Shown here piece by piece: positions 37,885 through 40,778 of a stretch of DNA of 64,000 nucleotides. The notes under the pieces are model-generated. The model was not told the DNA's origin. It was given only the letters and a program-made list of their open reading frames with translations, and made no database searches. Numbering within the stretch: position 1 is the stretch's first letter; every line of letters begins with the position of its first letter. The position numbers and the translations under genes were made by a program. The stretch comes from Blepharisma stoltei ATCC 30299. Its lineage: Eukaryota > Protista > Ciliophora. Location of the stretch: contig CBFDEM010000033.1 of assembly GCA_965603825.1 (NCBI GenBank), positions 1-64,000 on the forward strand, given 5' to 3'.

Positions 37885-38814
37885 TATGCAAATTATATTG
37901 TTATGGGCGTGGCCATAGGAATTTAGATATGAAATCTCATATGTAAGAAGCTGGGGATGAAGAAAAGTGGAGGGAAATATAAAGCTCAGTCCATTTTACC
38001 ATAATATAATCCCAAATTCTTCCTATTTAGAATAAAGAAAGCTAAGGATTCTAGAATGCGGAGAATAGTTTTAGCTGAAGCTTTTTTTAATTAATTAAAT
38101 TTTTGAATGAGATGAATTTTAAATGGAAGAAAATCAAAGAGTTAGGAGAAAAGCAAATTTTATGAAAATGAAAACAAATATTTCATAATCAAATAAAAGT
38201 TAGAATTTTTAACATTGTATATTTTATTAAGAAGCTTAAATAAAGTCTATGAGCAACTGATTCATTCAATATTCTAAACCATACTTGTGCAGATGAATAA
38301 ATATTCTCTAGCAATGAGATAGTCTGTAATGGTATTCTAATTTGCTAGTGATATGTTAATCTTAGGATTTTTATTGTGTGGGATACGAGCCAACTAGAAT
38401 TTTTAAATTTTTAGTCGCTAATAGATCAGAATAGAACAAGATTGTCTAATTTAGAGCTACTTCTCATTTATAATGGACAAAAATTGGGATTAATTTAATT
38501 TGATTTATTGCTTTCATCTGAGATTGACTGCTATATATTTCTATGCTTGAAAATGTTTAAATGAGAGAAAAATCTTCTGAAACTAGATATCCAGCAATTA
38601 AATTAAAGTAATTTATAAATTTTAAAAGGAGAATTTAGCAAATATTAATGATTTTTATCAGCTTTTAATCAGCTTAGACTGCTTTTTCATGCCATTAAAA
38701 TAAATCAAATAATAAGCAACTATAGACAATAAATATGAAATATATATCGGAATTTGGAAAATAATTTAATGGCCAAATTAATTTTTATGATCCATTTATA
38801 TCTATAGTAAAGCG

Positions 38815-40370
38815 ATGAATTGCTGAAAATCCTATTGCACTCAAAAGGCTGCAATGTTTTGTCTATGTTCTGATGAAAGAATTTATTCTTGTGAAACCCA
38901 TTTAATTGAGCACTTCAAACTATTTCCTCATAAAGCTCATAATCCAGAAGTCTTATGCTTTAGCCCGCATCCAGGAACTAAGCAAGCTCTCATTTTTTAT
39001 CTTTCAAAAAGAATAGTAGAATTGAATAGTTGGTTTCCCTAAAATAAATAAATATACTATGATTATTACAAATTTAGAGGGCTGCATTATATTTTCCTAC
39101 CCCTATATGCATTGCAATGAATTAATTTTACTTAATAAAGCAACAAATTATTTTAAAATGATTAGAAAAATGGTAAGATGTCCGTTCTAAAATCAAGACG
39201 ATTTACATAGAAGCCAAACTCTCGTTAAAATTAGCACATTAAAACATAAAACAATAATTAAAGTGTGTTTGAGTTAAATGGTGCATCAAGAGATAATATG
39301 GGTGAGTATAAATTAGATCAACCAATAGTTTCCAATCAAAATTAATATGCGATATTTCTATAAAGATTAAGGAACTGAATTCTCAGCTAAAAATTGCAGT
39401 TGATGAAATTAAAAGAGTAAAAAATGAAGCCCATTCCTTAATAGAAACAATATCTTCAGCTGTTCTCTTAAAAAAAGAAGATAAATTTGGTAAAATTTTA
39501 GTTTTTGACCTTGATGCAGCAATTAAACATATAGAAATTAATTTTTGCAGAGTCGATAAAGATAAGTTTCTGGATGGTTTTGATATTTACAATTATCAAA
39601 ATGAGCGAAATGAAATGTATCTTCTTAAAGATAAGCCTAGAAGTCTACTTCGAGTAAATCTCAATGATCTCAAAAGCAGTAAAATGGAGATTCAAGTGTT
39701 AAATGAAAATGATGCATTAGCAATAGCCAAAATTTCAGATAATGCTCTTTTCTGTACTTTATGAGATGATAAAGTTTATCATTATTCTAGCTATACATCA
39801 ACTTCCTTTTTGATATATCCTGATTGTAGAATTAGCTATATTCCTGATCGCTTGTTCTCATGTATTCGTGTATGCCCTATTTTCTGTAATGATGAAGTGT
39901 ATGTTTTTGGTGGTCAAACTTCAAATGGATTACTATTAACTCCAGAAAAATATATCATATCAGAAAATAAATGAAAACAAATTCGCAAAATGAGCTGTGG
40001 AGCAAACTACTGCAACGGCTTTTCTTATAAAAATCAAATTTTCTTTACTGGGAGTGAGCATAAAAGTATTTATATTTATAATGTTTTGCTTGATACTTAC
40101 AAAGAAATACACGCTAATTTATCTGGCTCAGGAAAAATTTTATTTTTAAAAAATACTGTATTTTATGTAATTGAAAGCTCCTCAAATATTTTTGAAATCA
40201 GCGCTGATGATCCAAATAAATTCAAATTCTTTGGAAAAATTTCATCATTTTGGGGCCCTATATCTCAAATTGTGCAATTTAAAGACTCTGTTTATTTTAT
40301 AAGTTCTTACACTTCTCTTTATAAATTCAATTTAGTTCAAAGATCTATTGAGAAGTTGAACCTATCATAA
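38815..40370 (+). CDS. B-box-like/coiled-coil/kelch-like protein (418 aa after removing the 299-bp insertion)
   Basis: MNCWKSYCTQKAAMFCLC...CETHLIEH; VYVFGG...EKY...(TGA=W) kelch motif; the two halves join in frame on excision. Confidence 0.8.
39027..39327. mobile_element. IES-like insertion: TA-bounded, 299 bp net, within AATAGTT direct repeats, imperfect TIR
   Basis: AATAGTT at 39025-31 and 39324-30; left end TAGTTGGTT versus right-end reverse complement TATTGGTT; AT-rich non-coding interior; excision restores the ORF. Confidence 0.8.
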
Positions 40371-40778
40371 TTTAAAAGATAAATGCTTTTATGAGCCAAT
40401 TTATTTTCGATTTTTAATTTGTTAACAGTAAATATCTTTGGGTTTGAGAAATTTGTCTGATAAGTATCCTTTATTTTCATCAATTAAGTTCATAAGATGC
40501 TCAAGATTTTCATTTTGCTCACTTTGGTGATCAGCTAAATTTATTCTATATCGCTGAAAATAATTGGCATTAGCCATTCCCAAAATACATCATTAATATC
40601 TTTAATTCATTTTAAAATTATTAATTACTTAAACTAATAGCCTTATTTCAATTTTAATCTGCTCTGCAATTATTATTTTAATATAAAAACTCTGAGGCAA
40701 TAGTTTAGATTTCTATAAGCCTTATTCTTCATTTTTTATTAAATAGTCAATAATTTCGTCACCTGGAGAAAAATATAA

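Follow-up and report, generated by a model that had tools for sequence, protein, structure and literature searches.

A gene of a large Blepharisma stoltei ATCC 30299 family with kelch-like repeats is split by a 299-nt insert that is found both in somatic DNA and in germline-rich libraries. The insert is probably a germline-encoded MITE/IES-like element with terminal inverted repeats (TIRs) which stays in somatic DNA, leaving a young pseudogene in a redundant family. In anatomy it resembles an IES or MITE, yet it lacks the property that defines an IES, removal from somatic DNA. The window analysed is the whole 64,000-nt stretch at the start of contig CBFDEM010000033.1 (C33) of assembly GCA_965603825.1, and all positions refer to it.

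The split gene and the structure of the insert

The upstream open reading frame (ORF) runs from an ATG at 38815 into the insert, where a TAA at 39040-42 ends it early. The downstream frame, which begins NSFQSKLICDISIKIKELNSQLK... (also given as NSFQSKLICDIS...), has its earliest in-frame ATG only at 39615. The two frames are out of register, 299 being 2 mod 3. The gene and insert comprise the following features.

38815 to 39042, + strand: N-terminal piece of the interrupted gene with 72 native codons, rich in Cys/His and ending ...KRIVELNS, then WFP and TAA
39025 to 39031: left AATAGTT direct repeat, containing TA, core TAG at 39027-29
39030 to 39325: AT-rich non-coding element of 296 bp, which with one TAG makes up the 299-nt insert
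39030 to 39042: left TIR arm TTGGTTTCCCTAA, 6 perfect pairs, 10/13 overall
39313 to 39325: right TIR arm TTAGATCAACCAA, paired with the left arm
39324 to 39330: right AATAGTT direct repeat, core TAG at 39326-28
39324 to 40370, + strand: C-terminal piece of the interrupted gene, reading through 348 codons as far as TAA at 40368-70, with a coiled-coil-like stretch and kelch-like repeats

The initial annotation had described an identical pair of AATAGTT 7-mers 299 nt apart and an uninterrupted 418-aa ORF after deletion of the intervening DNA. Both copies of the 7-mer were located (39025-31 and 39324-30), with identity ending on either side of it. When the 299 nt were deleted by script, the 72-codon and 348-codon frames joined into one 418-codon ORF with TGA read as Trp. 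The AATAGTT pair alone proves nothing, since identical 7-mers are frequent at such spacing: the window holds 65 identical pairs per kb at 150-500 nt.

The paralogs gave the decisive evidence: their colinearity across the predicted junction had been named at the outset as the test on which an interrupted gene would stand or fall. All homology searches were run piecewise, and the joined, insert-removed protein was translated in scripts only. Searched separately against its own genome, the N-terminal piece gave 150 matches and the next piece 22. At every locus matching both pieces, the two hits adjoin each other and the codon count between them is exactly as expected. Across the junction, at least 12 intact paralogs of 415-429 aa show zero gap in alignment; they sit on C53, on C12 (two) and in arrays on C46, C44 and C63. 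In these alignments the NS that closes the first piece coincides with the NS that opens the second. This gap-free colinearity with 12 intact paralogs is beyond chance, as is the TIR described below, and shows that the gene was once continuous and that one copy of it took up the 299 nt.

The N-terminal piece is 41-44% identical to the N-termini of its closest paralogs, and the family as a whole has more than 100 matches in the genome, several copies carrying TAA/TAG stops. Four TGA-free pieces of the gene were scanned against Pfam and all kelch matches were sub-threshold, with a Kelch_1 (PF01344) score of 16.9 bits, below the cut-off of 20.1. The closest paralog, on C53, scores above threshold (24.3 bits, E 2.2e-5). 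No Pfam match was found for the Cys/His-rich N-terminus, which looks B-box-like by eye only. Tandem arrays of the family occupy C44:635-690 kb and C46:154-169 kb (loci L004-L010 and L021-L031). Several of the array copies contain interrupting TAA/TAG stops, a pattern suggestive of birth-and-death evolution in the family.

The insert itself is 27% GC over its 299 nt and has stop codons in all six frames. Its ends are laid out symmetrically and in register, as TAG (39027-29), TTGGTTTCCCTAA, the interior, TTAGATCAACCAA and TAG (39326-28), and the direct repeat reaches 7 nt through chance identity of the bases beside TAG. The imperfect TIR seen at the start is thus borne out, at 13 nt with 10/13 pairs, but the one-base offset ascribed to it is absent. 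The idea that such an offset impairs excision falls with it. The window contains 4034 pairs of identical 7-mers spaced 150-500 nt apart, and with every register allowed just 0.12% of them had a TIR as good as this.

The TAG-TIR...TIR-TAG layout looks like the footprint of a cut-and-paste element, and it is also how many Blepharisma IESs appear. As in MITEs and class II TIR elements, the TIR is directly flanked by a target-site duplication, and the insert is small (296-299 bp) with no coding capacity. Several homologous copies at non-homologous sites, also expected of a MITE, were not found within the 41.5-Mb somatic genome. There, the BLAST search for other copies that the initial annotation had proposed, run with the 299 nt, and a pattern search for the TIR architecture both returned the insert only. 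Apparently single-copy in the somatic genome, the element does not seem placeable in a MITE family. As in IESs, a TA-containing terminal direct repeat (AATAGTT on both sides) would allow precise excision, and such excision restores the ORF in silico.

Somatic, germline and RNA forms of the locus

The reference was compared with published descriptions of the somatic genome. The assembly totals 41,464,486 bases in 64 contigs, CCCTAACA telomeric repeats fill positions 1-1497 of the window (~1.5 kb at the contig start), and TGA must be read as Trp for genes to remain open. The published B. stoltei ATCC 30299 somatic (MAC) assembly has 41 Mb in 64 telomere-to-telomere contigs, CCCTAACA telomeres and UGA as Trp (PMC9942806). 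The match in size, contig number, telomere and code indicates that the reference fits this somatic assembly. Scattered variant units occur within the telomeric tract.

Public sequencing runs were examined as assembled contigs, which drop rare variants, so that a minority of insert-free molecules would escape. X1 derives from the same sample as the probable source of the assembly and may be the assembly's own data, and is thus not independent of the reference. It gave a single 11.3-kb contig (depth 52.8) that is identical to the reference over 38300-40700, has no branch, and carries the insert but lacks every germline-only insertion described below. All sampled words of the locus are present in X1-X5.

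X6 and X7 are germline-rich runs from a second study, whose four runs most probably represent the four sucrose-gradient fractions from a MIC-enrichment experiment. Their contigs run across both boundaries of the insert and also bear further germline-only DNA. The insert is thus germline-encoded, its presence in germline (micronuclear) DNA being one of the properties of an IES. Germline-only insertions were seen at the following sites.

38362 to 38364: BogoMITE-type end at a TTA site in intergenic DNA upstream of the gene, in germline-rich libraries
39044 to 39046: nested IES at an ATA site inside the insert, ~260 extra nt in X6 and X7, absent from the somatic form
39132 to 39134: nested germline-only BogoMITE within the insert, at a TTA site from which X7 contigs break off into its G/C-run terminus
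39498 to 39500: 90-nt germline-only insertion at a TTA site in the downstream exon, both forms in X6
39625 to 39627: BogoMITE-type loose ends at a TTA site in the downstream exon, in X6 and X7

All of these insertions are gone from the somatic form, which keeps the 299-nt insert. BogoMITE is the most abundant germline-limited repeat. The ends at 38362-64, 39132-34 and 39625-27 in X6/X7 read GGGGG...GAG / CTCCCC...CGTGAGTGAACAA, and the C-rich ends agree with the published BogoMITE inverted repeat and TAA/TTA duplication. Three BogoMITE insertions lie within 1.3 kb of germline DNA, one each in upstream intergenic DNA, the insert and a coding exon. Contigs of X7 also break or bear loose ends at 38629-38712 and 39719-39752; these breaks suggest further germline-only insertions, at a local density of about one per 350 bp.

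A pattern search for the BogoMITE TIR found no match anywhere in the window, and the window is without all the germline-only insertions that X6/X7 show around the split gene. The reference is thus not a MAC+IES hybrid at this locus, and the initial claim that the contig is not simply germline sequence stands: it is somatic. A hybrid reference, or germline reads contaminating the somatic assembly, would make the insert an ordinary excised IES. That the reference consensus was built from one strain's long reads, with X1 possibly the same data, leaves some room for such an artefact. Against it, the somatic assembly is matched in genome size and contig number (PMC9942806), X4 and X5 from the second study contain all sampled words of the locus, and an empty-site contig is absent from X1, X6, X7 and X8. 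We regard an assembly artefact as extremely improbable and rejected it on the missing BogoMITE terminus and missing germline-only insertions.

No joint of 39024 to 39324, as precise excision would give, occurs in the contigs of X1, X6 and X7 (DNA) or X8 (probable RNA), and the empty-site junction is absent from the whole assembly. By contrast, the 90-nt IES at 39498 survives in X6 as two separate contig forms. X1 and the reference both keep the insert; removal from somatic DNA is thus not seen in contigs, which a rare excised form could escape. X12, a run of the source's own study with 80 Mb of contigs, holds 0.06 of the sampled words of 38300-40400. X12 may be a second strain, one that perhaps lacks this subtelomeric locus or has diverged strongly there.

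Transcript evidence came from X8, which is RNA by the program's guess and whose strand was taken from the ORF rather than from the data.

39156 to 40357, + strand (from the ORF): extent of X8 contigs, beginning inside the insert, without 39438-39486

A 998-nt contig covers 39156-39437 and 39487-40202, and a second covers 40181-40357. The first passes the right edge of the insert (39323/39324) unspliced. Each of the four RNA-like runs holds less than half of the sampled words of 38300-40400, which is what the two X8 contigs alone would give, and exon 1 thus seems uncovered in RNA-like runs. The initial annotation had proposed looking for the restored junction in RNA; X8 (probable RNA) contains no insert-free contig. 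The 49 nt missing from the X8 contig (39438-39486, ends TT..AT, 2 nt ambiguous) are not GT...AG on either strand, and their loss shifts the frame. No such gap is present in the DNA contigs of X1, X6 and X7.

An unusually long spliceosomal intron, removed from mRNA, would also restore the reading frame on removal. However, no register of the repeat gives a 299-nt GT...AG interval, and the sole GT...AG choice is 300 nt long and soon hits a stop. Blepharisma introns are mostly 15-16 nt (PMC9942806). With no frame-restoring GT...AG interval and an RNA-like contig that is unspliced at 39323/24, an intron was rejected; we give it almost no credence.

Origin and fate of the insert

Taken together, our results are best explained by a failure of somatic removal. 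A non-coding TIR element of ~296 bp would have inserted in the germline, hitting codon 71/72 in a single paralog of a large family whose members combine a Cys/His-rich N-terminus with a coiled-coil-like stretch and kelch-like repeats. The short target duplication would be TAG, which together with neighbouring bases reads AATAGTT. Somatic editing takes out no fewer than five further germline insertions within or near the gene, two of them nested in the element, and leaves the element itself. In the main somatic form the element thus counts as macronucleus-destined sequence. What is left of the gene is a stub of 75 codons and a remainder of 348 codons that has no start of its own, with weak transcripts that begin in, or read through, the element. 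Such a copy would be a young pseudogene or, at best, the source of an N-terminally truncated product. The mobile-element origin is an inference; that the element failed to be excised, and was not simply something other than an IES from the start, and that the gene has lost its function are likewise presumed.

Both ORF halves are still open, so that on the scale of neutral decay the lesion is young. This strains the explanation: open halves call for a recent insertion or some remaining use of the gene, yet two nested germline insertions imply age. Enough time has passed for a 260-nt IES and a BogoMITE to settle in the element, BogoMITE being a family reported to have been active recently (preprint 10.1101/2022.05.02.489906).

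The initial annotation had proposed a somatically retained or polymorphic IES. Somatic presence, IES/MITE anatomy and insertion into a once continuous gene uphold part of this proposal, but a polymorphic or partly excised state gains no support, X1, X6, X7 and X8 containing no insert-free contig. The other possibility it raised, that of a recent insertion flanked by a target duplication, accounts for the findings no less well than a retained IES, with the duplication read as TAG rather than 7 bp. In a stricter form of the retained IES, retention would be very high but incomplete, a minority of somatic copies excising precisely at the TA-containing repeat to give the 418-aa protein, with retention possibly upheld by the maternal macronucleus via scnRNA scanning. 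The TA-containing direct repeat, the inverted repeat, the AT-rich non-coding interior, the ORF restored by precise in-silico removal and the two intact ORF halves all favour this reading. So do reports that excision is a continuum, that assemblies conceal partly retained IESs, and that Blepharisma has scnRNA-like 24-nt RNAs (10.1101/2022.05.02.489906). However, a young pseudogene predicts intact halves equally, the insert is kept in RNA contigs, and neither an insert-free contig nor a graph branch occurs in X1, X6, X7 and X8, although X6 keeps both forms of the 90-nt IES at 39498. Low-level excision giving a rare excised form is possible, but an incompletely retained IES is on balance unlikely.

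We also considered that the insert was never mobile, being filler or templated DNA captured in germline break repair, with microhomology as the direct repeat and chance as the source of the inverted repeat. It is single-copy in the somatic genome with no relative found there, and identical 7-mers are common in this AT-rich window. Against this, so few 7-mer pairs carry a comparable TIR, and the symmetric TAG-TIR...TIR-TAG is what cut-and-paste elements leave; capture during repair therefore seems quite improbable. Nor is there much to recommend an epigenetic lock, in which an excisable IES is retained in the laboratory strain by the maternal macronucleus copy and other lines from the same germline allele would excise it and express the 418-aa protein. 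If true, an early-branching ciliate would have a gene that is naturally and heritably on or off; we consider such a lock very improbable. Only the insert-bearing form was seen and nothing supports a switch. The heritable off-switch like mtA/mtB that had been suggested initially thus finds a single form, in a family of more than 100 matches with several copies already dead. A non-removed, germline-encoded element remains our preferred reading.

Comparison with known systems

Blepharisma IESs have been described by Seah et al. (bioRxiv 10.1101/2022.05.02.489906). Like them, the insert is intragenic, AT-rich and non-coding, has a TA-containing direct repeat of more than 2 nt and a short TIR, falls into the non-periodic length class and hosts nested elements. 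Unlike them, it persists in the main somatic form and belongs to no known family, and its termini depart from the published weak consensus motifs (10.1101/2022.05.02.489906). With BogoMITE and the 'MITIES' it shares small size, non-autonomy, inverted-repeat ends, a 3-nt T-A-containing duplication and a position inside a gene.

The hallmarks of BogoMITE are a C-rich TIR of ~30 nt (CTCCCC...CTCCGTGAGCGAACAAAA), a TAA/TTA duplication and a length of ~389 bp (preprint 10.1101/2022.05.02.489906). None of the three is shown by the outer insert, whose TIR reads TTGGTT... rather than CTCCCC..., whose duplication is TAG rather than TAA/TTA and which measures ~296 rather than ~389 bp; it is also single-copy in somatic DNA and not excised. 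The BogoMITE TIR is instead shown by the nested insertions at TTA sites.

The insert fits branch 3b of the 'MITIES' model, a MITE that the excisase leaves in (10.1101/2022.05.02.489906). The locus is a clean and datable example of this branch in Blepharisma, where a domesticated excisase would leave a transposon-like insert that is tolerated because a redundant gene copy was hit. The event is of an already known kind and leaves current views unchanged. Within the same few hundred bases, a removable 260-nt IES and a BogoMITE lie inside a non-removable insert. The locus thereby offers a convenient natural setting in which to study how DNA is marked out for elimination in the Blepharisma lineage.

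Two Paramecium systems bear comparison. The mtA/mtB mating types reportedly switch through alternative IES-like excision, in work of Singh et al. from 2014. A switch of the mtA type needs two alternative somatic forms that are maternally inherited. The likeness is in general idea only, that keeping or removing a germline segment decides gene function; here one form is seen, in a redundant family member.

The nested IESs of Paramecium tetraurelia are closer. Mayer, Mikami and Forney are said to have found, in the late 1990s, that a mutated outer IES stays and the inner IES is still excised. The outer sequence there is a proven IES disabled by mutation of a boundary TA, whereas the Blepharisma insert has an intact TA/TAG boundary on either side, its past excision being putative. 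In both systems, inner germline inserts are removed whilst the surrounding element persists in somatic DNA.
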